Shown in pieces: positions 6,401 through 63,307 of a stretch of DNA of 64,000 nucleotides. Origin of the DNA: Lepidodermella squamata (Eukaryota > Animalia > Gastrotricha); assembly GCA_047495785.1 (NCBI GenBank), contig JBLDXI010000024.1:4526001-4590000 (forward strand), given 5' to 3'. How positions within the stretch are numbered: the stretch's first letter is position 1; each line of letters opens with the position of its first letter. A program made the translations under genes and the position numbers. The notes under the pieces are model-generated. The model was not told where the DNA came from, did no database searches, and worked only from the letters and a program-made list of their open reading frames with translations.

Positions 6401-9400
6401 TGCCAGATGCAATGTTTTTTCAAGGTTTCACACCTATGAACGGACAGACATGCGGTGACGTAACGGACAGACTGTGAGCGTAACGGACAGAGACACAACT
6501 CAAGACAGACTGACTACTCGAGAGAAAAGAGCGGAACACCATTGGTCAGAGCGCGAAGTACGAGGGAGGGGGGAGGGCTATCGTACCCTCCAGTTCGGCA
6601 GGCTAAAGTGGAAAATCCCCGAAAAATCCACAGGGGGACCCTTTTTTAATCACGGTATGGCGTGAGCTTTCTTCGGAAGCCAAGCTTTCAACAATTGTTT
6701 ACTGAATTTTGTGAGTCTCTATAGTCAATAGAGGTTTCTATTCGACTATATAGTCTCGGTGGAAAACGCCATTACTTTTTGCCTGTGGTCTGTGGGCATT
6801 AGCAAAAAAGACACAAACCAACTCGTGATTCACAAGACACAACTATGCGCATGAATCTGAACCAGAACACAGCATGAACCTTGCGCATGAATCACATAGG
6901 TGGCTATAAGATGTCCAAACCAAAAGTAATGGTGTTTCCCACCGAGAAACCCACTGAGAAACCTCAACAAATTGCCAATATTCGGGAAGAAAATCGTTCA
7001 AGGTCACGCCATACCCCGATTAGATCCATCGTCGCGTCCGATCACTACGCGCTTACGGTTACTACGCGCACAGCCACGTGACGTGGAGCCTCAAATTTGA
7101 CTTTCCAGTGATTTTTTCGCATTGGAAATGCAACCCGTTTGATTACCAATTAGAAAACTTGAATAGAAATTGTGAAAAGCATTGCGAAACAGAGAGATAA
7201 ATGTGCGAAAATTTCCGACTTGACCAATGACACATTTTTAAATCTAGAAATTGCGCGGCACGATGAAAAGTGGGTTTGAAGAGAATATTTAAGCACAAAT
7301 TTTTATAGCGAATCTGGTCAACTGCGCGTTGAAATTTAACTTCTTTTATCCTCATCCGTATTGTCGCGTCTCATTATGCAAGCAATTTGGAGAATTAAGG
7401 TGAAATGGGAAAAATTCATTGGCCCCAAGTAGAAGCCTTACCCGCGCGTGATTTGCGAGCGCACACCCAACTTCGCTCGCGTAGAAAATGCCACCAATAA
7501 GGCCGCCGAAGTTTCGTTATTTTCTCCGCTTGTAGCAGTTTGTACTTCGCTCTCCGAAGAGTTCAGTCTCCGAAGTAGTTTGTCACCGCTCTACATATTA
7601 CAAAACCCTAATAATTTAGAAAAACTGAATAGATATTCTCCTCTTCAGATGCATGGACCATGTCACCAATTGATTGCGAAGACATTTTGGCGCGTGATAA
7701 CACGAAACAGGACGGTTCTTACACAATATACCCGCCGTCATTCTCAGCAGTGTCAGTTTACTGCGCGATGAGCATCCTCGGTGGAGGTTGGACTGTATTT
7801 CAACGCCGCCTAAACGGCTTGGTTGATTTTTACCAGACTTGGGCGAATTATAAGGCTGGCTTTAGCACGGGGGTGACCGAATTTTGGCTTGGGAACGATA
7901 ATATCAACCGTCTCACGTTTCAAAATTACAATTCATTGCCGCTACTTGGTCTCTACATGGTTGCGGCTGACGGTGATCGCGGATTTGCTATTCACAAAGA
8001 ATTTTATCTAGACGACGAAGCTAGCAATTATACACTTCATATTGGGTCGTTTGAAACCGGCAATGCAGGTGAGTATTGATACTCGCCCTAATTATTCTGA
8101 TGGATAATTTGGAACCAGGCGACTCGTTAATCTACCATAACAACCTCCCGTTCAGTACTTATGACCGAGACAACTCGATGTATTCAAACTGCACGAGCGC
8201 ATACAGAGGCGGGTGGTGGTAAGCTTTACTGCGATTGATTCTTTTCAGACGATCTCCCCGATCTTTTCCAGGTATGGAAACTGTCTTCATTCCAATTTGA
8301 ACGGGTTAGGCAAGAAGGTTATTCAAGTTTTCTTCGGACGTTTGCATCGTTCTGTCTTCCAGATTATATGGCTCAAGCAATTGGGGCCAAATGATATGTC
8401 ATAATTCTTTCAAAGGCTTCACGGTTGGGATGACGACCGCTATGATGATGTATAGACGAAACAATCCCATGGAAGTTTTTCCATGTGAGTAGTTTATCTG
8501 TGTTGAAGGTCTATCAATTCAACGCTTTGATTCAGATCCACGTTCCCTCACGCCAGTCGACTGCGATGAAGTGTTGAAAGGCAATCCGTTTTCGAAGAGT
8601 GGCACTTTCAACGTCTATCCCGTGGGGTATACCAGCCCAGTACTCGTATACTGCGAAATGGCTGCCCAGGGTGGGGGTTTTACAGTTATCCAGCGCAATG
8701 CAAACTACAATTTCAACCAATCGTGGTCTGTCTACGTGGCGGGTTTCGGCACCTTGACTTCCTCTTTCTACCTTGGCAATGACAAAATGTACAAACTCGT
8801 AAACCCGCAAACTGGATTGCAGTTTCAACTGATCATTACTTTGGAAGACAACACTGGCATGAAGCGAACGGCAGCTTACAACTCGTTCAACTTACTGGAA
8901 AACGTCAACTACACTTTATCGATTTCAGGCTATCAGTCTATTGCCAGTGATAATGCCGGGGATTCGCTTACAACATCGAACAATCAGCCGTTTCAGACGT
9001 ACGACCAAGCTCAAGGTCGAGTTTGCGGACCTAAGCGACCAGGTGGCTGGTGGTTCAAAGTTCCAACCAACGGGGACTCGGTCAATCCTGATTGTTCCGA
9101 TGCGAATCTCAACGGACTCTTTGGAGGAAATACATGGGAAATGGGGCAGTTCTGGAACTCGTTGACAGGCAAAAATAAGTCGCTAACCTCAAGCACAATG
9201 ATGATCAAGCCCTGTAATTTATAGAAGACCTATGAAATTCGGCAGAATTCGGGAGTTTCTTTTTCAGATACTGCTAAGCCCATGGATTGTATGGACGTGT
9301 ATAAAACGAATTCGTTGGTCTCCGGGGTTTTTTGGATTTATCACCCGGTTGCTGGCCCATTGCAAGTTCTCTGCGATCCCTCGATCTACTTTACAGGGAC

Positions 9401-12400
9401 GCCCGGCTGGACTGTGAGTCTAGCAAGTTCTTGGTATATTTTCGTTAATTACTAGCCTATAGGTGATTCAAATACAAGTTTACAATACCACATCTTTCGC
9501 GAGAACATGGTCGGACTACAAAACTGGCTTCAGATTTAGCCCGTTCTCTCAGACAACTGACTATTGGATTGGTAAAACTTCTAACATCGCATTCATCCAT
9601 TTGTTATTTTTTCCGTATAGGTAACGAGAACTTGTACAAACTGACGAAAGATGCAGCCTATCAGCTGGTGGTGAGAGTGGGGCTGACTAACGGCACGATG
9701 TTGAAGGCGTTCTACAGTGACTTCCAAGTTAGCAGCGAGACTTATGGCTATGGACTTTTCGTGGGCAGCTATCAAGGAGATGCTGGAGATATGCTGACCG
9801 CTAAGCACAATAACATGCAATTTTCAACGTACGATCAAGGCCCGGCTTATCTCTGCTTTTCGAACTATAAAATCAGCGGCGGATGGTGGCTGCCTGCAGA
9901 CTGCTCATTCGACTCGAATGCAAACAACAAAATGTCTTCAAGCGACGTCAACGCCACGCTAAAATGGGGTACGTTGTCTGTCAAAACGTTTTTGATGGCG
10001 ATTCAACGGAAACAATGGCGTAAGTTGCGATTACTGAACGCAATGAGACGTGTAATATCTCAAATTTTTCAGCCAACGTTAAGAACATTCCCAACGCGAA
10101 ATCACGGCTTATGTCTCCGACTTACGGAATTGTCATGTACGACTGTAATAAAAACTTTCAGGGATTCGACAATGGGGACAGAGTTTATTCTGCGACTTAT
10201 GGAATATATTCCAGCAACAGTTTTGTTTGCAGTGGTAAGTTTTCTTATTCTCACATCGCGATGACAATCAAACCTGTTTTGTAAACAGCTAAGGCCCCAG
10301 CCCAGGACTGCAACACCGCTTCGAGTGGCGCGGGAGTGAATTCATTCTTCGACTCCATCTCAGGCACTTCCTACTCCGTTTATTGTGACCAGGAAACGTT
10401 GGGCGGGGGCTGGACTGTTATTCAGCGTCGGATGAATAGCTTGAATCCCTTTTCTACTTCCTTGAGTAATTACGAATTTGGGTTCGGCGTAATAACGGGC
10501 GATTACTGGGTGGGAAATTCAATAATTCGATCGATGACTCAGGCCGCTGATTACGAGCTGCTGATAGAAATCGGCCAGGATAACAGCTGGGGCTTTGCTT
10601 TGTACGGAAATTTCTACATCACGTCGACTTATAACAATCTGAACGTGTCTGGATACAACAATGTCTCAACTGTGGGAGATTCCTTGACGCCTCTGTCATC
10701 TCTACCTTTCATCATCGATCCTTGCGGAGCAGGTGGTGGTTGGTGGTTGGCCCAACCTAGCTGCTCGCTAGCTAACATTCAAAGCAACCTGAACAATTAT
10801 CTGGTAAACCAAACTCAAGGCTACATGAACAGTTACTGGAGAACATTCAGCTCAGTGGCAAGTGCACCTCTAACACATACCGAAATGAAAATTAGGCGCT
10901 CCACGAGGGGAAGTACTATGTTTTCATACATTATGGCGCCGAATTATCAATGCAGTCCTACTACTGGCTCTTCGTACACCTTTGAAAACCTTACCTCAGT
11001 GTCGATGTGCACGGCTGCTTGCACCTCTTACAAAGCTTGGAACTGCCAGCTTGTGATCTTCAATAGACTTAATTTTTACTGCACTATGAAAAGCGACTAT
11101 TGCGAGCCCGGCATTGGATCTGTTTTCACGGATGTTGATTCATACTATCGAAACGAGCTGCCGAACCATGTCTCGAAAAGTTGCGGTTTCCCGCCAGCAA
11201 TTAGAAATACGAATCGCCAGATCGTGGGAATGCCAACTGTCATGTCGGTGAATTACACCTGTACCGTTGATATTACAAAAACCACAGTGCTAACATGCAA
11301 CGCTACGACCAAGTTATGGACTGGCAATTTCCTGGTTTGCCCGGATTGTTCGGGCATTGGGAAGTGTATGAATGGAGGCGTGTGTTACGCCACTAACACC
11401 TGCCGCTGCGCTCCAGGATGGACAGGTACAACATGTACCGTACAGACGAGTGATTGTTCGGCCATCGGATCATGCTTCAATGGCGGTTCCTGTATTGGTG
11501 TTAATGTTTGCCAGTGTTTACCTGGCTGGAACGGAACGAACTGCACGATACGTAAGTTCGAACTCTTTCGCGAACATTATCTTAAAGAGATTCAATTTAT
11601 TTTCAGCATCGTGTTCTGCGATTGGGGGATGCCAGAACGGAGGATCCTGTGTTGCCCCCAATTCGTGTACATGTTTTGGAAACTCGACCGGCATTGATTG
11701 CTCTGTGCTAACGAACGTAACAGATTCGTGTTCTTCGATTGGCGGATGCCAGAACGGAGGGTCTTGTGTTAAGACCGATACTTGCGCCTGTATTGGAAAC
11801 TGGACCGGCATTGACTGCACTGTGGCAAAGAACGGAACGAATTCGTCATCATCATCATTGTGTTCTTCGATTGGCGAATGCAAGAACGGAGGGTTCTGTA
11901 TAAAGCTAGATACTTGTGCATGTTTTGGAGGTTGGACTGGCAAGGACTGCTCTGCAAAAATGAACAAATCAGATTCTGCTGTTTCGATCGCCTCTCTCGT
12001 TGACCTGCCGCCTCAGGTCCTAATCGCTGCGGCTGCTTCAATCAGTACTATGGCGCTGGAAGCTTCTGAATCCATCACTTCTACAGAGAACGCAACAGCC
12101 ATGGCCGCAGCGTCTACCGCTTTCATGGCTGGAATGGCCCCCGTTATGGGTAAATACGCTGAAGTAGCAGCTGATATGTCCCCTGCAGCTGTGACGAACG
12201 TCACAATGGGTTTTGCTTCTGCAACGAGCTCTGTTATGTTTGCCGTGTCTGATGCTGTCGAAACAACAAGCGGATCTACGACACCAGCTCCGTCAGATAA
12301 AACGAATAAATGTAAATCGGTAACAGTGGCATCTGATGACGATGAAGAATCACCTGCTCCTACTGCTGTCCTTTCAACTGACGACGTAAGTTGTTGTCGA

Positions 12401-15400
12401 GATAAACCATGCTTGTATGAATAAATTTATTGTGTTAAAGACGTCTAAGCTGTATGGGAACTTCAATGAAATGGTTGAACAAATGCTGAAAATGGTCGAA
12501 ATCAACGTGAAATCCGGCAAAAACTTCACGTTCAACGGGAAATTTTTCTCAATCGCACTCAGCGTCGTTGATATGAGAACGTTGGCAAAGTTGAAGATCG
12601 AAACCATTCATGCCTCAGTGGAGTTTCCAAACACGACATCAGCAGTTGAATTCATCGATTCAAAAGCTTCGCAGGTTAGCCTTAAAGATTCTGACACTGT
12701 CACGGTTGCTCTTACGGCCTACATCGTCAATGTCCTCGATCCGGATCAACCATTCAACCTGCCGACAATTTCAGTCAAGGTTCTCTATCAGAAGAAAGAG
12801 CTAGTTCTAAAGAAAGGCTACGCCACTAAGATAACAGGCAAACCTTCTGCAACCCGAACAGCAAAGCTGAGTGGCCAAAAATCGGAGTCTCAGTGCGTCG
12901 TAAGTGAGATGAAATGCGATGTCACTGCGAATGCTGATGCCATAGGATCGCTGGCGCTTTTCCCAGTCTCTACGGGTTCAGGCGATTTCATTTTGACTTT
13001 TCCGACCATCAGATACAACTATACGGCTTATCTTTCCCTTAACAGTACCCCCACTGTCAGAAACTACACCTGGTCAATTTATGTAACTCAGAAAACTGTC
13101 AATTGCAGCGTTAATGCCACGCTTGGTGAACTCAAGTCAACCTACAATCCAGAAGTTGAATTGAGAGTGGTCATCCCTCAGACTGCTCTATTCGATTTCG
13201 CTGAATTGCAAGGACTGTCTTCAAGCGAAAATGTCACTTTCAAGCTACATGTTTACACTAAAAAAGACTTTTCAAGTTTCTCGACTATGGACGACCTGCC
13301 AGCAGATGCTTGCGAACTACAGCGATGCTACGGTTACCACCTCAAGATAGGATTCGCTAGGGCAAAATCAACAAGTTCAAGGAGAAGACGCGATGCATCG
13401 GGTTCAAGCTCTGATGACGATTTTGAGGTCGACCCCAGTTCGAATGAATCAGCCGTTGTCTTCAAATCTTCCTACTTTGGCGATTTTGGGGCCGACCTTG
13501 TGGTGTCACCAAATTCAATCGAATTTTCGGATATTTTCGCCAATTTCGCTACTCTCGTATCAGATAATGCTTACGTCCTCGCTTTTCAAGTTGCCGCTGT
13601 GGTCTTTTGCATCATTGGCATTATTGTTGTCAGCCAATTTGATAAGCTCGACATCAAGGAGTGGGCTTTCATGTCTCTGAAGAGCAACAAGCCGTACGAA
13701 GTGCATAAATATCTCGTTTCCGTCGATCATTTCGGCGTTAAAAGCTACCACCTGAAGCCTGTGGTCCTACTCCGAGCTTACGGTGATATCAGCGACACGA
13801 ACTGGCGCGTCCTTGAAGATTGCGAGCGAGATTCAAATTTCAACGGCAAGCGTCCAGCTAATTTCATGTTGACCACCACCATGCCGCTCGGCCACATCGA
13901 GGCAATCGAAATTAGACTACACAGCCGATACAGGGCAGCGCCAGGCAATAAGCCACTCGAGATGCAAATTGCCAAAGTGGTTATAGTGGATGTTGCGAAA
14001 AGCCAAAAATTCGTGTTCTTAACCAAGTCGCCTATGAAAAGTGGTGACATGGTGTCTAAGCAGCTAGCATCTGAGGATGACATTAAAGGCTTCCGATATC
14101 TGGTCAGCGCTCATTCTCGAGTTGGCGTTTTCAGCTCTCACCCTTGGCTATCGATCGCGAGGCGTCCTCTTCCCAGCAACTGGACCCGATGCGAACGGCT
14201 GGCTTGTGTAACCAGCGCTCTATTCATGGCAATGCTAGTCAATGCGATGTTCTACGGGAAGGAAAGTCAATCGCCCCGGGTTGGCATAAAAATCGGGGGA
14301 TACTTCCGCCTGTCCTGGTTCACAGTCTACACAAGCTTCATCGGATGCGTCATTGTCATCCCTCCAACTGCAATTATGGCCTTCATTTTCAAACGAATCA
14401 GACGTCGATCAGCTGAGAATAGCCAGTACACCACGATATTCAATGTTGCCCTAGGATTCCGACAAAGAAATCCTGACGACAAAGAAAAGAAGCCCTTCCA
14501 GCTTCCTTATTATTTCGCAATTGTCGCATGGTTTTGTAAGTCAATAAGTTTAACATAAAACAGCACTCCATTTTCTTCTTTTAAGTGGTTGCTGGGTGCA
14601 TCGGGGCATCATCTTTCTTCATCGTCATGTACAGTTTGATGTGGGGCAAGGAGAAGTCTCTGCAATGGCTTAGCGGGATGATCATGAGCGTTGTTCAAGA
14701 CATAATCATAATCCAAACAGTCAAGGTCGCGCTGTTGTCTCTATGCAGTTCAACTTTACTATCCCTTCCGGATGATGGTCTGGATATTGGCAAGATGGCA
14801 TTCTCCAAGAATAACTCTAGCAAGAAAACGGAGCTCTTCAAGCGCATGCGGAACATCATCGCAGGGATTTTCCACCACATCATTTACGTCGTGGCTTTTG
14901 CAATCGTAATCTCAGCAACGCAAAACACTCTAGCCTATCAGCAAGTTGGCGATTTGAAGCCACTCGTTGAGATGCCTACTGTACCTCAGATGGGCGTGAT
15001 TAATGACTACAGCCAGATTTATTCATGGTTGAACAACAATCTGTTGCCACAGTTTTTCACTGCGAACCAGCTGAAAAAGGGCCTGAACTTCAACCTGAAA
15101 AATATCTACCAAGTTCTAAATCACGACGTCGTGGTTCTTGGTCCAGTTCGCTTGCGACAGCAACGAGTTCAACCTTGTAAGCACGACCATGAAGAATGTT
15201 GTTGAGAAATTTTCATTTTCTTGCAGATTATTGTCCCTTGGAGACGTCGCCAATACCACTGATCAATCAGAAATTCACCAAACTGCTCATTTTGAACACG
15301 ACGAAGTGCCAAAATCCATATGTTGACCAACTTGGTATCGGCGAAACCACTGAACGGCGGCAATTTTCGAATTTATATTGGACCTTCAACGAAAGTATTA

Positions 15401-17090
15401 CAGCTTGGTTGGCTGAGAACGTCACGACTGAGCAGGCTCCGTGGATTTATCGAGAAGACAGCGGCATTCCTTACTCGGGATTTCAAGCTAGTTACTCGAG
15501 CGGTGGCTATTACGTAGACCTCCCAGTCACACTTAAAAAAGCGAGGGCGTTCGTCACTCAGCTCCAGTCGAGAAGATGGCTGGATAACGCAACTTCAGTC
15601 TTGTTTGTTGACATGGTCCTGTTCAATGCTCAGGTCAATTTGTTCATCGCTGTCAAAGTGGTGTTCGAAGCCTTAAGTGCTGGAGGTATGACCTATCACG
15701 CAAGAATGTACCCTCTGCAGCTCTATCAATACATCGGGGCTAGCTCGATCTTCGTTTTCGCGATTCAAGGCATCTGGATCTTGCTGGTCATCTCGCATCT
15801 GATTAAGATTTTCATTCAGATGAAAAAGCAAGGAATCACAAAGTTCCGAAAAGATGGATGGAATTTGCTGGAGCTGTGCCAGATATTGATATCCTTGGCC
15901 ATCGTTGGATTGTTTATAGCTCGAATTCTGGTAGTGATGAAGGCTGTAACCCGGCTTCAGACCGACCGAACTTCATTCGTGAACTTTGATCTTCTGGTCA
16001 ACTGGGAAGCTTTGATGGCTAACCTGTATGGAATCACATTTTTCATGACGATGCTGCTGTTTTTCCGCCATCTCACCTTCAACAAGTACTGGTGCATCTT
16101 CTTGGGAACGCTCTCCAAGGGCAAGGCGGATATATATTCATTCCTGTTCACTTTCGTCATCATCACACTGTTGTTCGCCACACTGGGTTATCTGAGCCTA
16201 AATACGACGTGTGACGAGTTTCAATCATTCACTGCTTCGATTATGACCCTTGTTCAGAATATCATCGGAGTGACTGGGTCCTTGATGTCGCTGAGCTTTA
16301 CATCTCGTTATATCATGTTGTTCTGCATGGCTTACTCAACTATTGTCATGTTTTTGGCTGTTCAGGTCTTCATGACCATCATTTCGGTCACTTACAGCCA
16401 GGTGGCTGAAAACGCTGAAGAAAACACCAACTGGGACTATGAACTATCCGGTTACATGGCTGAAGAGATAACGCGTACTTTCGGCAAAGCTGAGGAAAAG
16501 AAGAAAAGAGCTGCGCCCATTTTCAGGCCTATCGGAGAGAGAAATCTGGCGAGATGTAAGCTGTTTCCTAAATTTTTGGCTTTTTATATCATTTCGCTCT
16601 AGTGGAAATGTCGATTCACCGTTTGTCGCGCTATGTCGAGTCGCGCGTTGCAGATGATACTATCGAGCGAGTTGCGAAACGCGATCGATGCCTCGTGCAC
16701 TGGATGGACATGAAATTGCGTGGATTACGGCTTCGCAAATTTATGAACACCGTTATGCGTCAAAAGCCAAAAGCCACCAACGCACCTGCGAAGATTGAAG
16801 ATCCGAAGATGTTCAGGCATAGTGGCAACATTGCCAGTCAACGAGGTCATTTCACTGAAAAGGCCCATCCACGTCGAATGTCTGAGCCCTTCCCTCAAAA
16901 TTGGGTGTATCACATGCAGTCTGGTCCGGATGCTAAGCCATTCGTCAATCCTGGGAGAAAGTCGCTGTTTGGCATAGTTCTCCCGAGTAACAAGCAACGT
17001 GGCAGCTTGCCAGTTGGTTCTCTGCTTGGAACTTACGATCTCAAGAAGCAGGGTGGCGGAAATCGACTAAATCCCCACCCCGCGCACTAG
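3424..17090 (+). CDS. Polycystin-1-like receptor/channel subunit A (multi-exon): SP-EGFx~7-F5/8C-EGF-like-FReDx3-degenerate CCP-FReD-PAN-CCP-EGFx5-GAIN-like-TM1-PLAT-TM2-5-polycystin channel (6 TM)
   Basis: Leader exon [16 protein letters not shown] (3424-3472) and phase-compatible GT-AG exons. FReD motifs YC.M...[10 protein letters not shown]...FWLGN...GGWW; '[15 protein letters not shown]' before TM1; PLAT; '[15 protein letters not shown]'; TOP-domain motifs '[11 protein letters not shown]', '[10 protein letters not shown]', '[15 protein letters not shown]'; stop TAG at 17088-17090. Confidence 0.9.
4251..4942. mobile_element. Nested MITE-like inverted-repeat elements in a gene A intron
   Basis: Inner IR tcggtttttagaccaaaataaaatttga (4351) / tcaaattgtattttggtctaaaaaccga (~4599); outer degenerate IR atttctgggcccgctcatgtttcgtcc (~4258) / ggacgaaacactggcgagcccggaaat (~4909). 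Confidence 0.6.
7649..10900 (+). CDS. Gene A: four tandem fibrinogen C-terminal (FReD) domains (approx. 7649-8484, 8536-9212, 9269-10019, 10289-10900)
   Basis: Each repeat begins P.DC and contains GWTV(F/I)Q, (F/Y)(W/Y)(L/I/V)GN, AGD/VGD and GGWW motifs. Confidence 0.92.
12441..16600 (+). CDS. Gene A: GAIN-like stalk, TM1, PLAT, TM2-5 and polycystin cation-channel domain
   Basis: ORFs 12417-14558, 14585-15205 and 15196-16602, joined by ~50-nt introns; hydrophobic segment pattern and motifs typical of the PKD1 family. Confidence 0.92.
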
Positions 17091-20539: not shown

Positions 20540-23500
20540 TCATAGTTGCATGGCTGTTTAGCGGTTTGTTAGTATCACCTTTTTTAGGTGACTCCAGGGA
20601 GCACCACGAGGAGGTCAACCGCTCAGCTCCCCGAAACAAAAATGAAGCGCAAAAATAAATCGTAAAGCTACCGCACAGTGGTGCATTTAACTCAGATGGC
20701 GTTGCGTTTGGCCTTTGGCCTGACTAACTTACCATTGAAAAAATTACCCTTCAAACTTACAAATGCATTTAGATGGTAACCATGGCTGGGTCCAACCGGT
20801 GTAATTCAGCACTCCCCAGGTTTTGTTAGCTTCAATGAGGCAAATTTTAATCCCGATATTCTGTATGAGAATCGGATGAGAACCTACCAACACATGCGAT
20901 AACAACCGAGCTGTCCCAAGATAACGGATCGAGAGTATCGATGTCGTAACATTCGTACGTGAAATTTGTAGCGAACTCATATATCGCATTAGCTGCTGCT
21001 GGGACTACGCCAGATAGTTTGACGTTCGGGAACATTGGAGGGCTGTCGCAATTCAAAGGAATGCAAGTACCAGGTGTTTTCGGCTCCCACTGCTGGCTAT
21101 CACCACAGTAGATAGTTTTCGATTTAACGTAACTATCCTCAGATTTGAACGTATAACCACGGACGCAAGTGTATTCCCAGGTTGTGTGAGCTCTGTTTTG
21201 AACATCGTAAGGCAGCGGATCGGGAATGGTGAAGTTATTCCATGAATAATCCACCACAGGCGGCATGGGACATCGCGTGGATTTGCAGATAATTTCTTCA
21301 CCAGTCCACTCACCGTAAGGCTTAGCGCAGATTCGAACAGGCAAGCCGGTTGATACCATCATAAAGTCATCGGCGCATTGATAGAATAGGGTCATAGTTC
21401 CGCCCGAAACTTCGACATTCGGCAGACGGACAGCGCTACTGTTCGATAAATCGGGGTATAACCCACACAACGTCCGACAATCCAGCCAATCGCCGACCCA
21501 TCTTTGAGTGTTGCTATCGCATGACAAAACTGTGGTATCACCCTGCCACTTCGAGTTAGTGAAACCAGGCAAGCACGTGTAATTCACTGAGATTTTCGAA
21601 CTGAAGTCTGATGTGATGATTTCCTGCGAAGTTCCTGTCATTGTTGGCGGAGGACCACATTGACCGGGGAAGTAGCCGCAATCATCCATCCTGAAGTATG
21701 TGTCAGTTCCTGCTTCAGCTGCGCCCTTGCCAGGGACACAAGTGTCATTTCGTATCGTGCAGTCCCCATTGCCAGAGCCCTTCAGAGTGAAAACGGCCGT
21801 TTTGCAAGTCCAGCTACCATATCCTGCGCAGTAGCTCGTGCAATCAGTAGCTGTAACTTGTTTGGTCAACGTGTAGAAAATGCCTTCTTCACATTTGAAA
21901 TTCGATATTTTCAAGAATCTGCCAGGCTTTGTTGGCCGGCGAATTTTCATGGAGGTCCAGGATAAATTCGGATTATAGCCATTTTTGAATGTATACCAAT
22001 ACATTTGGGCGCTGTCAGGTGTTTGCTTGCCATAAATTGCGTTCAGATTTGAAGTCTCGTCAGTCGAGCTTGATGAGGCGCACGGGGTGGGTTGATCGAA
22101 CCACCAGCCCCCGCATAAATCAAAGCTAAAGAAATTCCCATTCAACGCTTTTAAAGAGTCCCCGGCAGTCGAGCAATCCTGATACTTCGCAATGTTCAAG
22201 GTGTAAGCATCACTTTCGGTGTAAAACAGTTTGTAATAGGCGAAGGCGTACTCCTTATCTGACCGCATTTCAACGAGAAGTTCGAAATCAGCTGCCGCCG
22301 TCAGACCTTTGATAAGCTTGTTACCCATCCAGTAATTGTTGGATGCAGAACCGATCTGATAATCGAAACCAGCCAGGTCGAGCATGAAAGTCGTAGTTTC
22401 ATCAACTCGGCGCTGAATCTGGGTCCAGCCTCCACCGAATGTCTCCATATCGCAATAGGCTTTGAAGGTAACGGGCGATCCGGCTCCGTTGTCTGCAACC
22501 AGGTCGCTGAAGGTTTGCGATAGGTAACGACTGGTTATTGGGAGATTGGCCTGCTTCCATGTACAGTCGTTTGGTTCAGCGTAAGCTTTTAGAGTAACAC
22601 AAAATAGTTAAGATTCAATCATTAAAGAACAACAGAACTCTTACGTTTGCAAACAAGGTCACTTCCAGAATAGACCCCACTGCGATCGTTCAGCATTAGC
22701 CTTGTGCTATCCCCGGAAATTTGTCGATACGCATGATCACACTTGTGGCTGTATGTGGCTTTCTTCCAGTTACAAACTTGGGTCGTCGAAGCTTTGGGAC
22801 GATATAGGGCATCGGTGTATCTTGGTTTTATTGCGATCTGAGTAGCTTGGCATGACTTATCCAAACTGGTCAAGGTTGCCCAGTTGAGGCCATAACCCCA
22901 GGTGGTACTTCCCCAATTTGCGGCGTTGAGGTTCCCCAGAGTCCGACAACCTGGTTTGTTATCGGGCCACGTCCAGCTACCATCAATAGGCGGGTACCAC
23001 CAAGCGCCAAACCATTTAGTGTCTTGCCAGTTCATGCAAGCCTTCATCGACCCTCTATCAGGCGTCTGAAATGGCTGGTTGTTGTGTTCCCATTGGCCGA
23101 ATGAATCTCCAGCGGCTAGGTCACTCGATAACGACGAGTCGAAATTCTTCAGCCTAATCCGATAATCTTGCTTCTCGGGGTAGATTTTTACGTCATTATA
23201 ATAGGCGTATTTCCATTTTGAATCTATGGGACTTTTGCAAGCTACTAGCAGAGAGTAGGGCGAAGACATTGTAAGGCGACTGACGATGTCCAGCCCAAGC
23301 CAATGGTCCCCTTTCAGACCCTTCGTAGGGCTTGAGAATCCGTTTTTATAATCGTCCCAGCCCCGCCAGAAATCTGTCTCGCCGTCGAAGCGTCTCTGAA
23401 TTACAGTCCAACCTGTTCCTCGGTTAGGATAAGTTGTCGAAGAATAGTCGGTGTCATAATCGCAGTACGCTGTGAATTCAGTGCCATCAGACAGCGCTAA

Positions 23501-26500
23501 AGTAGCGATACCAGTGCTGCTAGCAGCTGTAACACAGTCTTTGTTACGCATTCGACGTTTTATCGCGATTTGGGTAGCTGCCATAGATACTTTGTCCTGT
23601 CCCAGCGTATACCAGTTTACGCCAACAAAGCTACGCGGATCTCCGAAAAAACCATTAAGGTCAGCGCTAGTCTTGCTGCAATCGGAAGACAGCCACCACG
23701 GGCCTCGATTATTCGTTACGATACAACTTTGACTTTGACCCTTATCGTAAGTCGAAAACGGCTGGTAATTAGATGCCCACATCGATTCTCCCGCCAATTC
23801 TTTTGGATCAGTTTTCGAGTCAAACCCCTCAACTGCGATTGCATAGCCGTCTTGCTCACTCGAAAGGTAAAAATCGCTGTAGTAAGCATAGTAGGTCTGA
23901 TTATCGGCAGGATTTACAAGTGATATCAACATTGAATACGCCTGTGATTTGGCCAGCTGGTAGACAGTCTCCAGGCCAAGCCAGAAGTCACCTTTCATCC
24001 CATCTGGGCCTGAAAATCCGTTTCTGTATTCATTGTAGCTTCTGTTGAACAGAACGTCGAAGTTCGATCTCCGCTGAATCACAATCCAACCCATGGCTGT
24101 CGATTTACCCGGCGAAGTGTAGTACGTCGTCATATCGCAGTAGACCCGGGTCGGCTTCATACCGTATGGGTAGATGTAGTAGATTCCATCATCAGCCACG
24201 CCCTGGCCTATCATATCCACGCAATCAATTGGCTTGGGCCCTCGCCTACGGATCATCATTGTGGCTGATTTTAGGCTTTCATACCGACCTTTCCACGGGG
24301 CCCAGTAGACACCGCCTTCCCAGGTGTTAACGTCATAGATACCATTCAGGTTGCTCTCGCAACATTTTGCATTGTCCCAAGCTCCATTATGCCACCACCA
24401 GCCCGTTGTTTTAGAGGCTGAACAGCTCGAAGCTGCTTGATCCTTCGTTCTAAATGGCTGCCAATTGTGAGGACTCAACCCATCGCCAGCCACTTCGATT
24501 GAAGTGTTCTCCGAATTGTAGCCATACACAATGAGTTCGTAACTGGTATTGCTGTGCAGCCAAAACGCGTCATATCTCGCAGTTCGCTTCTCGCCATTAT
24601 AGTCTTCTAAGACAACTGCCAATTCGTAAGGAATATGGGTGTATTCAATGTTGGTCATTGCCCAAATCCATTTGTTCCCCAAATAGTAAGCCCCGTTAGG
24701 CGAGCCAAATCCGCGAACGTATGTTGTGAAGTTCTGCTCGAAACTCACACTCGGGTCGTTGTAGCGACGTTGTATGACAGTCCAACCGCCTTCAAGCGCA
24801 TTCATCTCGCAGTAAGCTGTGAAACTATCCCCTGTAACTGTGTAGAGAGTGTACGCTGAACTTGCAGCAGTTGGGTTGGCTTCTCTTATATCCAAACAGT
24901 CGCTGGGATACGGAAACTGTGGTCGAAGTTCTGAAATGATAATTCTGAAATATTTGCTATGACTAAAGTAAGAATCTTACGTTGCATCAAGTAAGGTATG
25001 GGGGATCGTCTAATCATCATCTTTGTCGATTTCATGCTCTCCCAGAAACCGCGCCAAGTTGCCCACGTGATCATTGAACCCTCAGTTTTCGCGGAGGCCC
25101 TTCCGTTCAGGTTAGCCGAGGCGCAGTCTTTCGCTTCACTAGCCGGCTTGTACCACCAGCCTCCAAAAGCTCCTTTTGCACAGCCGAAGGAGGTCGAGGT
25201 TCCTGTATCATTGTCGTAAGTGTAGAATCGCTGATTGTTAGCTTTGGGCAAGAAAGAATCGGAAGGGTTTCCAGTGCAGTCGAAATTGGAAACTCGAAGC
25301 GTGAAGCCTCCAGATTCGGGTTCAATGTAAAAATCTTTGTAATAAGCGATTTGCTCCACGTTATCAACCGAGGTTAGAACGATGATCATATCGTAGCGGT
25401 TCATCGAAGTAGTAATGGTATTGATGTAGTTGTTTCCCAACCAATGACTGCTCCCTAGTTCACCGAATCCGGCTCGATAATCGGCCCAGTTTTGATAGAA
25501 TTCTTTTTGCCCGTCTATGCGCTGCTGGAAAACCGTCCAGCCCCCGCCGTAGCTATTCATATCACAGAATACAGAAATTGGAGCTTTGGCGCCTGGAGGG
25601 TAGATGTTGTAGGTTCCATCAGTTAGTGAGGGTTGGCGAAGAGCATGGTCCTCGCAATCCACTTGAAGCATCGACCATTGATCTGAGGTTCAGAACAAAT
25701 TTCATACCTGGACTGGTCAGAGTTACCGAACTTACCGCAATGTGGCCATGGGTTTTCTTGATAACCAACTCCGAAAGACGTCGTATAACCGACAGGGCAC
25801 AAGCATTGGCAGCCTTTCTCGTAGGTACAGCAAGTCGAGCATGGGGCATGTGGTGGGCAGCCAAAAACCTTGAAAAAAGATTCTGCCTGCTGGCCAATGA
25901 AAGAAACCGGCACGATTCTCAACGACTTTGTCCTTATGTTTGGGCAAAAGTTCGTTGTAGCGTAAAAGCTCAAACTGCGAGCTCCGGGAAAGATCTTCAC
26001 ACCGGACAACGGATTGGCTTGTTGGTTCAAGATCGGGTAGTAAAGCCGGTCGTTTGTCTTTTCAACCAGGAACCAAAGTGAATAAGACGTGATGAAGCGA
26101 TTGTTGTTCGATTGCGACCTTCCCTTGACCGATAGAGCTGAAATCGACGTCGACCTACCGAAATTGATCTGGAAAAATTGCCGCCCGTCGTTTAGAGTAT
26201 TCGGCGTATAAAAGATCGCAGCTTTCTCGCTGTTATCATAGTCGGCTTTATCAGTAGCCGTATTCGAAACTCCGATTGATCCGCCCCATTTTGTCAAAGC
26301 TTCAACGATCAGCTCATTGTTGCAAACTTTTTCAGCACACAAAATAGAAAGATTCTTGAATGCTTCTCGTGAATTTACCTGGCGGTTGAGCGTCAATATA
26401 GTAGTTCTTCCCAGGCGCAAGCGTAGCGCACGATGTACCTGTCCATCTTTGGAAAAATAGGTTAATTTCGAATTATTGGAGTAATTCCATGGATCCAAAG

Positions 26501-29500
26501 TTACCCCACTGGGCAGTTGCATGAGCAAATGCCAATCGAATCACAGCAATCGAAACCTTCACAAAAATTGAATTTCAGCCTTGCCTTAGTCTTAACTCAG
26601 TCTTACATCTTTTTCCTTTGGCTGAACAGCCGAAAATGTCGACGACCATCGTTATTTTGGTATTGTAGTCCACTGGTATGATTTTCATCGCTTTTAGCTT
26701 CATAGGAGGACAGAACGTCTGAAGCGAAGGCGCAGTAGCATTCATCGGGCCGATGAAAAGCCTCGGAGACTGGTCGATTGCGGTATAGTAGTTGAAGGTA
26801 TACTCGTAGCCTGTATGCGACCACTGGACGTAGTAGGTTTTAATCCACTCGTCCTTGTTCGTGGGATCATTGCTGCCCGCCATTACAAGACCCGTGACAA
26901 CCTTCAGAATTGCAAATTCGATTTTCCAGAAGGATCGACCATCTTCGCTGAATCTTGGTGACCAGCCAATAGTTATGGTGTCTTTATTGTCCTGTTTTAA
27001 GCCATTGGCATCCGCTGGTGATCCACTATCGGCAGAAGTCACGTGGGCAATATATGGGAAATAGCTAGCTCCATCGAACAACTCATGCCAACAGTCACAC
27101 AGAGAAGTAACTAGAATACTGAGCCTGAAATCAAGTAAACAGGAAGCAATTCTAGGTTACATTTAGCCGTGCTAGCGCATCCCTTAACATCCGCGCGAAG
27201 AAAAGGCTTCACAGCATAGGATAGAATCCATATTGTCAACTCAGCAGCTTGAAGCCTTGGGCATATCTCTTGAGAATTTCGCGCTGTTTCAGCCCCGTTT
27301 CCTGCGAAAATGATCGGGGCAAGTTTCGTCCAAAAAGCCGTTGATTTGTGGACATGGATCTGCAGCTCTTTCGAACTAGGAAGGGCGCGATAGCTGACGA
27401 TGTAGTTCAGTATGCGCCCAGAACCCTGAAGTCCCTCAGTTCCGATAGATCGGACGAAGATTGGGCCGTTTGAGAACTTGAACCTAACCCAGGCAGGATC
27501 AGCAGGGGTATTGGCGATCGATGGATCAGGGCACCATGCCAGGTTTGTCTGGGCCAGGTTGGACGGAGGGTATGAAACGGTGCCATCGGTGTATACAGAA
27601 CTGGCCTCATACCCACTGGCTGCAACATAAGAGCTTGAAATTACGCTTTCAGCACAAGCGGATGAATAAGTGCCAGCTGGAAAAATTCAAAATGTTGAGC
27701 GATGCGTCTTTTAATGCATTTTTAACAAACTTTTGCTGCATTTGATGGTGGGCGGCAGGGCTGCTTTCTCGCATAGGGCTATATCGCTATTCTGCATATC
27801 GATATCATTCATACCAATGCCGCAGTTCCACCAGAAATTGCCAACGATTTCATAGCTCCCGGCATAATCAGGTTGACCTTGTAGCCAATTGATATAGCCT
27901 GTATCGTTCATTCGAGTACCGTCGTCCATTTCCCAAAATTCGGGCTTCTGCGGAAAATCGTATATCTTCAAAAGTGACATTCCAACGTAGACTGGATCGC
28001 GCCAGTGCGTCAAGTATCTAGCGAATTTCGCCTCCATGGGATAGTTTGTCGCTACCAGGTACGAGTTAATGAATTCACATTGCTGCCGAGCACTGCGAAA
28101 CTTATGCCCACTGACAGTCCCAATTTTTTTGTAACACCTTCCGTTGAAAAAGTTCTGAATTATAGAAACATTTTACTGAAGTTCTTATTGAAAACATGCG
28201 TAAATACCCATCCAATGTCACACTCCAAGCAGGGCAAGGGCCGCTCGCAGATGAAAAACCCATTGATTGTGTTAGTGTCGACAGTAGTCCTGACTCTAAC
28301 TGAAGTACTGTTCCAGTAAAGATAGGCCCACTTATGGGTATTTTGAGGAAATCCGTCCGCCCAAAATGTAGAATCATTCGCTGCGCCAAACACTCCATTT
28401 GGGAAGGGCGCGTTGTTATCAAGATCCCAGTCTGATTCGCGAAAATAACATTTTCATTATAGATAACAAGAAGAATATTCCTACTTTCATCCGGATCGCC
28501 GACTTGAGAGATATCAGAAGAATCAGGCGTGCGACTCAATCGAAGACTGTTGTCTAAGCCAATCCAGATTGCAGAACCCGTCATAACACTGCTGCTCGAG
28601 CTGATAAATGCAACGAGCTGAGCGAACACTTTGGCATCGGTTATCGATACCAAGTTGAAAGTGTTGAAGGCGTCGTAACAATAACCTCGAGCGTCAAAGG
28701 GGTTAGATTTTGTGACGGAACTAATCAAAAAGATCTGTAGGATGCATATCAAAAACGCGAAAAAGATTTTACGTGACAAGTTTGTAGCAGCTTGAACCGA
28801 CAGATGTGAAGCCTTCTGGGCAAAGATCGGAGCAAGTTGCGGCTGAAGGCACCGTGCAGACAGGAATAGACTCGTCTTGACAATTACGGGTGTAGATGTA
28901 CATATTATTGTTGATTCGCGTGCAAGGCTGGTACCAATTGTTACCCCACGGCAGAGATGCGAGCCTGTTGTTGGGATAGCTTTCCCATGTAGATGGCTCA
29001 CCTTCCCATTTGTATGCCGCTGAGCCATAGAACAACAGTAATATAATTTACTCAATCCTCAATCGCTTACTTTTGTTTCTGAGGACTAAATCAATCCAGA
29101 AGCCCTCCTTTTGCAACTCGTTAATTGCTCGAGTCATTAGCTCGCTTTCGTAGCGTTGCATCAGCGTCAAAGGGCGAAGTCCGGCGGCCTGGCATTTGCT
29201 TACCATCTTAGGCCTATCACCTGTGTCGCTGAATAGCCAGACGCATTTGTTGGGCGCGACTCGATAGCCGGCGTTGAGTTTTGTAAGGCCAGAATCATCA
29301 GCTGGCGATTGGCACTCTGAAGAGTAGGAATGTGTTAACAAGTATTATACAGTGTGTCATTCGCTGCATACGCTTATTTTAGCGTAGCGAATTTTTCATG
29401 GTTACATATGATTTTGGGAGAGGCTTTAGTCGCTAAGTTTATGTGGTTTAGAGGATTTTGACGTAGCTATCAAAATGAGATAAGAGATAAAATTGATATT

Positions 29501-58800: not shown

Positions 58801-61800
58801 GAAACTGCTTAGTGACTTCAGAAATATGTTAGAAGGCATGGCATCTATGGTGAAAGGAGCCTTATCTGCTGGGAAAGACTACAGCTTCAACGGGACCTTC
58901 TTCTCAGTCATTATCAGCAACACATTGGCTGGGGATCTGCCTGGAATGAAGTTGTACACGAATCTTGCATCTGCCGAGATTCCCTTCGTCAGCAGTTTGT
59001 CGATTCTGCTAGACAATCCACCTAAAGGCCTCACAGAGACGAGCAAAATCTCGGTAGTTCTGACGGCCTATATTTCAAACGTCTTCGATCTGACGAAGCC
59101 ATTCAACATGCCCACGATTTCAATGAAAGTCTACTTCGGCTCAACAAGCCTTGTTTTGAACAAAAAGTACCCAGTCACGCTCACTGGCTATCCACTGGTG
59201 AGCAAAGCTCGGCAGCTTTCGACTGAGAAGGTCGAGTCGCAATGTGACGTGAGTAAAGTGAAATGCGACGTCTCTAGTAACGCGGACAAGTTGGGTTCTT
59301 TGGCTACGTTTCCTGTTTCAACAGACGCGGGGGATTTTATTCTAATATTTCCGGCTATTCAATTGGACTATTCTGTTTTTATTTCTCTCAATGCGACTCC
59401 GTCAGCTGGATCCTATACTTGGTCTATCAATGTGACCGGAAATAACGTAGCTGCAAGCGTCCACTCAACTCATGGCGCTTTAAAAATGAATTTTAATCCG
59501 AAAATTGAGCTAAGAGTTGTGATTCCAAATGCGGCGTTGAATTCTTTCATCAAGCTGAGGTCCTCGGATGGCGCAGTCGTTCAAAATAACTCATTCACTG
59601 TACGTGCTTTTGCCAAGAAAAACTTGACCCGATATTCGCCCTTGGACGATCTACCATCATCTGTTTGTGAAATGCAGAAGTGCTATGGTTACCATTTGCG
59701 TATTGGTTTTGCCTCGGAAGATCAAGTCATCGGATCCAGAAGACGGCGCGATGTGAGCTCGAACTCTTCGTCAAATGATTTCGAACTGGACTCAGGCTCC
59801 ACCGAATCAAGGGTTTCCTTCAAGTCGTCTTACTTTGGGGATTTCGGAGCTGATTTGTTGATCTCCCCTAATACGATTCAGTTCTCGGAAATCTTCTCCA
59901 ACTTTTCGACTCTTGTGGCTGATAATGCTTTTGTCCTCGCTTTTATGATCGTTTGCGTCATTGGATTCCTAGCCGCTGTTGGCCTTGCTGCCAAGTCTGA
60001 TCGGGAGGATCTCAAAGATTGGGCCTTCATGCCGCTGCTGAGTAACAAGCCGCATCATGAATGCACATACTTGATTTCAGTCGACTATTACAAGGTAAAG
60101 AGGTACGAGTTGCAACCCCACGTCTTCATTCGACTGATTGGAGAAGGCTGTGAGACATCATTCCGGGAATCGCATGATGGCATGCGCAAAAATTTCGCTG
60201 GCAAGTTTCCGGGCAATTTTGCACTCACAACAGCCTTCCCGATTGAGTACATCGAGGCTATTGAACTCGAGATAGTAAGCAATCCGTGGCCTGTTGGGAG
60301 CCGTCCATTTCAAATCTACATGGATAAAGTTGTCATCGTAGACGTTGAGACTGGAATGAAATACATATTCCCTGTTCGTTCGACTATGGAATCTGGTGAT
60401 CGTAGAAAGACTGATCTCGCGACCGAGGATGATATCAAAGGGTTTAGGTATCTAGTCAGCGGCCATTCACGAACAGGAATTACTGACAATCATCCTTGGC
60501 TATCGATCATCAAGCGACCTTTACCTAGTAACTGGACTCGGGCTGAACGACTCTCATGCGTGGTTTCAGCTTTATTCATGGCTATGTTGGTGAATTGCAT
60601 GTTCTACGGCCAGGAGGGCTCATCTCCTAGGATTGGGATTAATATTGGCGGGATATTCCGTATTTCGTGGTTCACCTTCTACACAAGTCTAGCTAGTTGT
60701 ATCATCATCATCCCGCCAACAACTATCATCGCTTTGATCTTCAAAAGAGTCAAGCGTCGCTCAGCTGAGAAGAGTAACTGGCTAACTATATTCAATGCAG
60801 TCGTCAACGATGACAATGAAGATGAAGATTCGGACGATATCGCAGAAGATTCGAAAAATAAAAACAAACAGAAAAAACCTTTCCAACTACCATTCTGGGC
60901 GGTGGGAATCGCTTGGTTTCGTGAGTTTTTCGAAGATTAATTTAGGCTTGTTTAGGTCTTCCATCTATTTTAGTTGTGGCCGCGTCAGTTGTAACCTCTG
61001 CATTCTTGGTTATTATGTACAGCCTCCAATGGGGCCGAGAAAAATCACTGCAATGGCTTTCAAGCATGGGAATGCACATTATTCAAGACGTTATTGTAGT
61101 TCAGTCGGTCAAAGTCTTACTGGTTTCAGTCTTCACGTCTTCACTTCTAAAACTGCCCGACGATGGAATGGCAATGGGCAAGCTTGTCTATTCTCGATGT
61201 AAAAAAAAATACATATCCGAGTTTTACCTATTACCTGGTTTTTTGTTTCAGATAACAAATCTGAAAAAACGATAGTTTTCAAGCGGATGAGAAATACCTT
61301 AGCAGGAATTGCCCACCACATTGCTTACGTCATAGCTTTCGCCTTGGTGATCGCGACCACTCAAAACACGTACCGATTTCAAATCGTGAAAGACATTCGC
61401 CCTTTGATTTCTTTTGATGGCGTTGATCAAGTGCTAGAACCAATAACAGACCACGGAAAGATTCTCGACTGGCTTGGCAACAAAGTCGTACCAAACTTCC
61501 TGAACGGAAATCAACTGAATTATGGCGGAGTCTTCAATCTGAAAAACATTTACGTCGTGCCTAACCATGATGTTGTAATAGTTGGCCCGATAAGGATCAG
61601 GCAGCAAAGAGTTTCAGACAGCCCTTGCGCGATTTCAAAAGCGGCTTTTCCGTCCTCCATGGCCCCTTATCTCGAAAGCTTGACTGACACAGCTTGTCAG
61701 GGTCCGTATTCAAATGAAGCCGGCCAAGGATCTTCATCCGAGAATCGAGACTTCTCTTACGGCTGGGGCACTCTGAATGATAAATTTGCTGACAAATCAA

Positions 61801-63307
61801 ATGTGTCATCTGATGACGCGCCGTGGAGTTATCGCAAGGATTCCAACGGAGTTCTCTACTCGGGCTGGTCTGCTGACTATAAAACCGGTGGCTACTACGT
61901 CGACCTACCTTCAAAAATGTGGAGGGCCAAGCAACTGGTAGCCAATCTGAAAGCTGGGAGATGGCTTGACAACTCAACTTCAGTCCTATTCGTCGATTTT
62001 ATCTTGTACAACTCACAAATCAATTTGTTTTTGACTGTGAAAGTCGTATTTGAGGCCCTGTCAGCCGGTGGGATGAACTACCACACGAGAGTTTACCCGC
62101 TACAACTGTACCAATACTCTGGGGCTAGTAGCATTTTGATCTTCATAATTCAAGGCATTTGGATAATACTGCTGATATCTGTGACTATCAAAGCTGTTTA
62201 TTCAATGAAAAAACATGGGCCTAAACAGCATTTGAAGGATGGTTGGAATGTATTGGAACTTGTCTCGATCGCCATAGCTTACGGCATTGTCGGTCTCTTC
62301 GTTGCGAGGATTTCTAGCATTATCAAAATGATCAATAGAATGCAGACTGATCGATCATCCCACACTAATCTCGACCTACTGGTCAATTGGGACGAAATAA
62401 TGGCTAACCTCTACGGCTTGACCTTCTTCATGACCATGATGCTGTTCTTCCGAAATCTGAAATTCAACAAATATTGGTGCATGTTTTTGGCTACTTTATC
62501 GAGGGGTAGGAATGACCTGCTTTCATTTATCATTGTGTTCACCATCATCACAATGATGTTCTCTGGCTTGGGCTATTTGACTCTTGGGGCAACTCAAACC
62601 GAGTTCAGATCGGTAACAGCTTCAATAATGACCCTACTGCAAAATGTGATCGGTGTAACTGGGACTTTGATCTCCCTCGGCACAAAGTCTCGGTTGATCA
62701 TGATCTACTGCATCGCCTACTCTTCGATCGTAATGTTTTTAGCTGTCCAGATTTTCATGACCATCATAACTGTGACGTATGATCATGTTACTGACGACGT
62801 TGAGCATAACACTAACTGGGACAAAGAGGTGTCGGAATACATGGTCAAGGAATTTAAGAAGTTGATAACCAGAAAGCAGTCTAAGGAAGATATAGGAATC
62901 GACCTGTTAGTTAATGACAGCTCCTTTCCCGAACGTAAGTATAACATTGATGTCTCAAAATTTTTTAACTAACCCTTACATTTGCAGTTGATGAAGCATT
63001 GAATCGGCTTTTGCAACGTGTCGACGCCGTTGCGAAGAATGCTCCACTCATCGAGGAGGATAAACGAGTTGCGTGTAACATCCGCTGGGCCGAGCAGTAT
63101 CTCAGCCTATCGCGCGCAAAATCTGCGAAGCCCGATGTCCGACAACCCTCGGCAACATTCACTATAACGTCAGACGAAGTTGGAGCCCGGCGTCCTAAAA
63201 AGATTCCAAAACGAAGACCTTCAGTTGAACCCATCTTCACGGCAAGACTACCCGGTGGCTTCGCCTATTATGAGTTTCTCAGCCGGTTCAGTGAGCACAA
63301 CGTTTAA
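52879..63307 (+). CDS. Polycystin-1-like receptor/channel subunit B (multi-exon): SP-EGF-F5/8C-EGF-like-FReDx3-degenerate CCP-FReD-PAN-CCPx3-EGF-Thr-rich stalk-GAIN-like-TM1-PLAT-TM2-5-polycystin channel
   Basis: Leader MGIEILGFSLIFLFTSRAVEG (52879-52942); phase-compatible exons. Membrane half is collinear with and strongly similar to gene A ([45 protein letters not shown]). Stop 63305-63307; AATAAA at ~63535. Confidence 0.9.

Follow-up and report, generated by a model that had tools for sequence, protein, structure and literature searches.

Background

Polycystin-1, PKD1-like and sea-urchin REJ (suREJ) proteins with a cleavable GPS have 11 transmembrane helices, a GAIN domain directly before the first of these (TM1), a PLAT domain, a polycystin domain and a PKD channel. 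In GAIN domains the disulfides of the GPS and a kinked turn position the scissile bond (Arac et al., PMC3321182), and a survey of sea-urchin REJ proteins assumed that the members of the family are cleaved at the GPS (PMC1934368). Here we describe gene A, a PKD1-like gene of the gastrotrich Lepidodermella squamata, found in a 64-kb window (the whole stretch of DNA analysed, 64,000 nucleotides of contig JBLDXI010000024.1). Gene A shares all of these domains with the cleavable polycystins, as well as the stalk strand FGA.L.V.PN.I.F that follows the cleavage site. It differs from them in having YFG in place of the catalytic triad, no GPS Cys or Trp residues, and a predicted disordered loop with the motif RRRR, a candidate proprotein-convertase site, in place of the Trp-bearing segment of the GPS. 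Its ectodomain also differs, being made of fibrinogen-C and EGF domains and not of PKD repeats, with no REJ domain recognised by Pfam.

Convertase cleavage within a folded juxtamembrane domain is known from Notch, in which furin cuts at the S1 site in a flexible loop of the HD domain and leaves two chains that remain joined non-covalently and each supply strands to one fold. Gene A is like Notch in that its convertase motif lies in a loop of a juxtamembrane domain, although the fold is unrelated and cleavage is in this case predicted. Fibrocystin (PKHD1), a partner in the polycystin complex, has an ectodomain that is processed at a convertase site but, unlike gene A, is a single-pass protein without a GAIN domain, and its fragments are reported to be tethered differently. 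The GAIN domains of BAI2 (ADGRB2) and BAI3 (ADGRB3) are uncleaved and resemble that of gene A in that the fold is kept and the Stachel is buried without autoproteolysis. Unlike gene A, they have retained the disulfides, the Trp residues and, for the most part, a site resembling H-x-S/T. In BAI2 a furin site has been described between the CUB and TSP domains, far outside the GAIN domain (10.1101/2023.03.12.532270). Two flexible 'flaps' next to the GPS are described in reviews, with no convertase site there, and in the open-access papers we found no equivalent of a furin or other convertase site in GAIN domains or polycystins.

Results

Loss of the GPS determinants in gene A

The region of interest lies in the ~2.1-kb exon of gene A, in an open reading frame (ORF) at 12417-14558 on the plus strand. 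This ORF contains the peptide given in a preliminary description of the locus exactly, at 13326-13526, with RRRR at the position reported there. The Cys codon of CYGYHL begins at 13326 and the tail (...SPNSIEF) ends at 13526. Two alignments made with MAFFT (A1 and A2) comprise 82 sequences chosen from 150 family representatives. Two AlphaFold2 models were built from family alignments; model numbering is the ORF residue minus 8, and local model confidence is given as the predicted local distance difference test score (pLDDT). The elements of the region are as follows.

13329..13355, plus strand: beta-strand YGYHLKIGF (strand 297-305 in both models)
13356..13421, plus strand: loop of 22 residues, rich in Ser, Asp and Arg, in place of the Trp-bearing GPS segment (only stretch with pLDDT below 50; flanks differ between paralogs)
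13380..13391, plus strand: RRRR, candidate proprotein-convertase site (agg aga aga cgc; conserved R-x-K/R-R)
13455..13469, plus strand: strand VVFKS, equivalent of the C.C-bearing strand before the GPS turn (strand 339-343 in both models)
13473..13481, plus strand: YFG, replacing the catalytic H-L-T/S triad (phmmer alignment to the polycystin-1 C-terminal fragment; alignments A1 and A2)
13482..13526, plus strand: stalk/Stachel-equivalent strand and linker (strand 348-354; aligns to TAFGASLFVPPSHVRF of polycystin-1)

The preliminary description had aligned the tail to the GPS and stalk by eye, and both methods recover the same register. With phmmer the tail aligns to ATAFGASLFVPPSHVRF, with which the C-terminal fragment of human polycystin-1 begins (6a70_B, E 1.2e-11). 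In this alignment G355 of the ORF stands at the nucleophile Thr and Y-F at H-L, and the same YFG/HLT register is seen in A1 and A2. VVFKS aligns to ..C.C(N) of the members with HLT and to VVFKSN in the FFG class of spiralian proteins, and in the stalk strand and linker F349, P357, I360 and F362 are near-invariant across the 82 sequences.

The family consensus is a textbook GPS (Y........C..W......W...G......S......C..NHLTSFG.....PPN.IDF). In A1 and A2 the RRRR motif falls at the C.W..W..GC segment of the canonical members, which is where the preliminary description had placed it. The loss of the GPS Cys and Trp residues and the change from HLT to YFG, also claimed there, are borne out: YFG occupies the aligned position of the H-L/M/I-S/T triad, no Cys and no Trp is found between CYGYHL and TM1, and the four Cys (two disulfides) and two Trp of the GPS are missing. 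Because Gly cannot act as the nucleophile, the His base is absent and the four Cys and two Trp are absent, the sequence makes it a solid conclusion that the gene A GAIN domain is no longer capable of autoproteolysis.

The CYGYHLK strand was also considered as a true or relic GPS (HL-T-like) with an insertion following it, and this was rejected by comparison with amphioxus PKD1L3 (P0062). This protein has a GYGYHLSVRGLS strand followed by CSFWNE... and a complete C.FW..W..GC...C.C.HLT downstream. Since P0062 has both this strand and its own downstream HLT, YGYHLKIGF corresponds to the strand before the Trp segment. A hidden intron in 13320-13530 was rejected as well: GTAAG...AAG signals are missing from this region, which in gene C, a paralog in the same window, is conserved and remains in frame.

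A GAIN fold with one loop predicted to be disordered

The 552-residue AlphaFold2 model has a pLDDT of 89.5. As a Foldseek search with this model was swamped by matches to the PLAT domain, an ectodomain-only model of 362 residues was made (m63d06d642749; pLDDT 88.3, predicted template modelling score 0.86). VIA-align places GAIN domains in each of the first 11 ranks among PDB matches, with Z scores of 7.9-11.9; unrelated folds reach at most 6.5. The best match is BAI2 (8oek, Z 11.9), followed by CD97 (11.3), CELSR1 (10.8), BAI3 (10.3) and latrophilin-1 (10.0); GPR110, ADGRL3, a Chlamydomonas axonemal chain, GPR56 and GPR97 are also among the 11. The top Foldseek match in the PDB for the 362-residue model is the BAI3 GAIN domain (E 8.7e-5). 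Among the Swiss-Prot entries of the AlphaFold database (AFDB), the stretches preceding TM1 in PKD1L3, PKD1L2, PKDREJ and suREJ align over residues 2-362, with TM scores normalised by query of 0.54-0.61 for the first three and 0.45 for suREJ; PKD1L1 (0.36) and then the GAIN domains of adhesion GPCRs follow. AlphaFold2, VIA-align and Foldseek therefore agree in placing a GAIN domain directly before TM1. A lack of GAIN homology in the sequences flanking the motif, which the preliminary description had named as fatal to its proposal, is not what these comparisons found.

In both models strand 339-343 (VVFKS), the turn S-Y-F-G and strand 348-354 (DFGADLV) have a pLDDT above 90, and strand 348-354 is the hydrophobic last strand within subdomain B that corresponds to the Stachel or stalk. 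The sole stretch with a pLDDT below 50 is at residues 310-323 in one model and 315-324 in the other. This loop, which joins strand 297-305 to a short strand at 328-330 (FEV), is predicted to be disordered and is where RRRR (residues 314-317) is located. The models and the alignments together indicate that the juxtamembrane region of gene A is a GAIN domain that keeps its stalk-forming last strand and is without the GPS hallmarks. We regard the homology, the loss of the catalytic residues, the fold and the disordered loop as established.

A single conserved convertase motif

RRRR conforms to the minimal furin consensus R-x-K/R-R, and the predicted cut is after R325 of the ORF, giving a new N-terminus that begins DASG.... 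The pattern R-x-[KR]-R is found only once in the gene A ectodomain ORFs (1601 aa scanned), with none in the upstream ectodomain ORFs (8571-12386), and once in those of gene C (~1770 aa). Its background frequency elsewhere in these proteins is ~0.02-0.025 per 90 aa.

Conservation of the motif is equally well established. Gene C (~53128-62972, plus strand) is 50% identical to the gene A exon over 713 aa. Its equivalent region is:

59681..59884, plus strand: GPS-equivalent region of paralog gene C (RRRR at 59738-59749, YFG at 59831-59839)

SRRRRD is kept in gene C while the flanks have diverged, with ARAKSTSS in gene A against SEDQVIGS in gene C upstream and ASGSSSDDD against VSSNSSSND downstream. 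Within the clade of gene A, which has 100% support in the Shimodaira-Hasegawa-like approximate likelihood ratio test (SH-aLRT), the motif is at the same spot in all eight rows, that is, in all six distinct sequences. Four of the members are ENA metagenome proteins (P0001, P0002, P0003 and P0005) with 28-38% identity in the ectodomain alignment. Their motifs are SRRKRR, NRKRR, RRKKR and KRRRR, located 28-31 residues before the Y/Q/S-F/M-G triad. The closest relative, P0001 (1632 aa), is encoded by one uninterrupted ORF on contig k141_63249 of ENA ERZ27333047 (L001), beside an ankyrin-repeat gene. Searches with region 122-560 of P0001 and with region 150-430 of the exon retrieved no additional homologous proteins.

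Fibrinogen-C and EGF domains lie upstream of the loop, and TM1 and the cytoplasmic PLAT domain lie downstream. Because of this domain order the RRRR loop is expected to be lumenal or extracellular, where convertases act. The domain order and the pLDDT below 50 together place the motif in a predicted flexible lumenal segment, as in convertase substrates, and a single conserved site of minimal consensus in a predicted disordered loop is how a processing site usually looks. Proalbumin has a genuine convertase site at an RR-DA junction, with the same D-A at P1'-P2' as in gene A; Notch S1 (RQRR-E) tolerates an acidic residue at P1'.

A second R-x-[KR]-R was observed in gene A just past a transmembrane helix, on the predicted cytoplasmic side (KRIRRRS, ORF aa 660-663, in the 14394-14402 region), and its counterpart in gene C is RVKR at aa 744. 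These are most likely positive-inside juxtamembrane patches and not convertase sites.

Organization of gene A

The window is eukaryotic in character, with exons separated by introns of ~50 nt that have GTAAG...AAG ends. Gene A extends over ~8571-17090 on the plus strand and has the following parts in addition to those given above.

8571..12386, plus strand: upstream ectodomain exons with three Fibrinogen_C segments, EGF repeats and then a helical, Ser/Thr-rich stretch (Pfam, translation)
~12387-12440 and ~14536-14585, plus strand: short introns (GTAAG...(A/T-rich)...AAG ends)
12441..14535, plus strand: large exon with the GAIN-like domain, TM1, PLAT and the next transmembrane helices (ORF 12417-14558, 713 codons)
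12441..13526, plus strand: GAIN-type juxtamembrane domain, 362 aa (AlphaFold2 model, VIA-align, AFDB Swiss-Prot matches)
13569..13637, plus strand: TM1 (long helix 377-408 in the model; hydrophobic; aligned to polycystin-1 TM1 by phmmer)
13671..14063, plus strand: PLAT domain, cytoplasmic (beta-sandwich 411-541 in the model; Foldseek)
14585..17090, plus strand: C-terminal exons with Polycystin_dom and PKD_channel (Pfam)

Several ORFs nearby overlap by a few bases in other frames, which suggests further short introns of the GTAAG...AAG type.

Pfam at E <= 0.01 gives no GPS, REJ or PLAT match in the 12441-14535 exon and no REJ domain in any gene A ORF. The beta-sandwich at 411-541 of the 552-residue model matches the PLAT domains of pancreatic lipases and lipoxygenases (Foldseek, E ~1e-7), and the alignment to the polycystin-1 C-terminal fragment agrees with a PLAT domain after TM1. 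Residues 354-667 of the ORF align to the human polycystin-1 chains 6a70_B (E 1.2e-11) and 8z6f_A in a phmmer search of the PDB, and PF20519 and PF08016, the polycystin domain and PKD channel, are found by Pfam in the ORFs at 14585-16602. From the domain order, the PLAT fold and the phmmer alignment, gene A is a PKD1-like 11-transmembrane protein with an unusual lectin-type ectodomain. The absence of REJ does not exclude it from the polycystin-1 family, because human PKD1L3 is likewise without a REJ domain (PMC1934368).

The ectodomains of both gene A (8571-12424) and gene C (53128-58434) have several fibrinogen-C and EGF domains in place of PKD repeats, which is unusual for the family, and Pfam recognises no REJ domain in either gene. 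Between the two polycystin paralogs, at 20847-32948 on the minus strand, there is a long gene or gene cluster with at least five fibrinogen-C domains, two F5/8 type C (discoidin) domains, a C-type lectin domain and a Sushi domain.

Protease motifs in other members of the family

In the 82 family members, the 110 aa preceding the triad were scanned for R-x-[KR]-R and R-[RK]-[LIVM]-L. None of the 43 members with H-[LMI]-[ST] has a furin-type or RRLL-type motif, and 27 of the 39 without HLT have one (20 furin-type and seven RRLL). A Fisher test of HLT status against the furin motif gives p ~1e-5, on which we do not rely as the rows are related. All named relatives belong to Spiralia (Lingula, Haliotis, scallops, Mytilus, Argonauta, Dimorphilus and Macrostomum).

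In a tree calculated solely from the alignment columns downstream of the triad, a large group with VVFKSN-FFG-SF and no GPS Cys forms a starred set of 35 rows together with the gene A clade. These spiralian FKSN-FFGSF proteins (from Lingula, Haliotis, scallops, Mytilus and Argonauta) share with gene A the loss of HLT and Cys, having FFG or FLG and VVFKSN, and many of them carry RRRR, RKRR, RKKR or RRLL in a GAIN loop. Unlike gene A they keep W..W, and their motif is one loop upstream (-50 to -72). The exception is Argonauta P0028, which with the gene A clade is the only case of the motif lying within the former Trp segment.

Seven proteins (P0006, P0007, P0008, P0013, P0016, P0139 and P0159), which are Lingula and gastropod PKD1-like sequences, have RRLL in a GAIN loop 53-54 aa before the FFG or MFG triad, and their sister proteins have RKRR or RRRR in the same loop. 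RRLL is the cleavage consensus of S1P/SKI-1, and this subfamily may therefore rely on a second Golgi protease.

In a further group from scallop and pearl oyster (P0106, P0084 and P0030) the GPS Cys and Trp are kept and HLT is absent (for example C.C....IFATTF), and RKRR, RKKR or RRKR is present in the upstream GAIN loop of all three. On the same tree this group nests in the HLT clade and is a separate loss of HLT.

Discussion

Our results suggest that a furin-type convertase may cut the gene A GAIN loop at RRRR and so take over from self-cleavage, a prediction to which we give a probability of roughly 0.55. Convertase cleavage at RRRR is plausible from the motif, its setting and its conservation; what we infer beyond this, namely cleavage itself, the protease involved and what becomes of the fragments, is as follows. 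The GAIN domain would fold in the endoplasmic reticulum without cutting itself and the stalk strand would stay buried. A furin-type convertase would then cut the lumenal loop after R325 in the late secretory pathway. The N-terminal fragment would comprise the fibrinogen-C and EGF domains and most of the GAIN domain, and the C-terminal fragment would begin DASG..., 29 residues ahead of the canonical post-GPS stalk. In terms of sequence position, the longer tethered stalk foreseen in the preliminary description would thus stand.

The same cannot be said of its suggestion that the ectodomain would be released or shed, which is speculative and which we consider doubtful. In the model the fragment after RRRR supplies three strands (328-330, 339-343 and 348-354) to the GAIN sandwich. 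Because the C-terminal fragment keeps these three strands, and because there is no Cys past the site, the two chains would stay joined non-covalently. They would be held as after GPS or Notch S1 cleavage, and probably more firmly than after GPS cleavage. As far as the model goes, a heterodimer of the Notch S1 type is more likely than free shedding.

Several observations weigh against convertase cleavage as a replacement for self-cleavage. The RRRR motif has dense Ser/Thr flanks (STSS before and SGSSS after it), and O-glycosylation can block convertases; these flanks may be O-glycosylated, which would modulate or block cutting. Twelve of the 39 relatives without HLT carry neither motif, and cleavage is therefore not obligatory after the loss of HLT. 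On the tree the HLT state needs only two changes, amounting to one or two independent contrasts, and with so few independent losses of HLT the family-wide association is of limited weight. The basic motif is also in different GAIN loops in different subfamilies. Read data are of little help: run X1 ('RNA?') gives only 120-220-nt contigs of low depth with odd strand-switch joints, and run X2 spans an intron and so behaves as genomic. In X1 there are also many 'opposite strands' joints ~100-120 nt apart at 13242-14443, with the look of a library or assembly artefact. Of the claim that cis-autoproteolysis was swapped for a convertase, then, the loss of all catalytic determinants and the presence of a conserved motif hold, while the swap as a functional replacement is made less certain by the approximately two losses of HLT and by the relatives without a motif.

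Uncleaved GAIN domains are common and functional, for example in BAI2 and BAI3 (PMC3321182; 10.1101/2023.03.12.532270), which also counts against cleavage, and the gene A GAIN domain could be a non-cleavable single chain. Its polybasic patch would then have a non-proteolytic role, binding a sulfated glycan or acidic ligand, pairing with the adjacent acidic run (DDD) or regulating the domain. A lectin-like fibrinogen-C ectodomain would fit a glycan-binding setting, and the 12 motif-free relatives also speak for this reading. However, it is the R-x-K/R-R pattern and not net charge that is conserved (RRRR, RKRR, RRKKR, KRRRR); the motif is the only one of its kind in the ectodomain and is in a predicted disordered, exposed loop, which is typical of processing; and the sister group has RRLL in a nearby loop, a different protease motif and not a basic patch. 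We therefore think a purely non-proteolytic role unlikely, although it must be taken seriously. It could also be that the loop is cut not by a Golgi convertase but by, for example, an extracellular trypsin-like protease, as a regulated activation at the cell surface. Four Arg residues in a predicted exposed and disordered loop are a substrate for nearly any trypsin-like enzyme, and several further cleavages are known for members of the polycystin-1 family (PMC9672506). Trypsin-like enzymes require P1 only, however, whereas the conserved basic residues at P4 and P2 are what a convertase requires, and we regard cleavage by another class of enzyme as rather improbable.

That the motif is without meaning, because of an unrecognised intron or because gene A is a decaying pseudogene, seems to us highly improbable. 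The reads of X1 and X2 gave no clear transcript support and Pfam recognises no GPS, REJ or PLAT in the exon, both of which speak for such an artefact. Against this, the frame is open over 713 codons and 50% identical to a second intact paralog, relatives are present in other assemblies, and the fold is predicted with high confidence. The GTAAG...AAG signals of the real introns of gene A are absent here, and X1 contigs cover 13284-13334 and 13350-13401 with no joint that skips the region.

Conclusions

For polycystin-1 and the adhesion GPCRs it is a long-running question whether GPS cleavage is needed for signalling, or only the fold and the tethered stalk. Even if the site is uncut, the gene A family provides a clear polycystin GAIN domain stripped of every GPS hallmark, of a kind that Pfam misses. 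If convertase cleavage takes place, a lineage that lost self-cleavage and gained a conserved protease site within that very domain would be an argument for the two-chain state as the actual requirement. Gene A would then be a natural system in which cleavage could be switched by a protease inhibitor or a four-residue mutation with the stalk undisturbed. More tentatively, Golgi proteases may have taken over from GPS autoproteolysis as the source of the two-chain state in one large, spiralian branch of the polycystin-1 family. These would be of the furin type (R-x-K/R-R) or S1P/SKI-1 (RRLL) depending on the sublineage, acting in different flexible loops of a GAIN domain without catalytic residues of its own. 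If this is true, the branch would include natural GAIN domains whose cleavage is switchable by an external enzyme, and the target of selection would be the cleaved architecture, held together non-covalently, rather than autoproteolysis itself.

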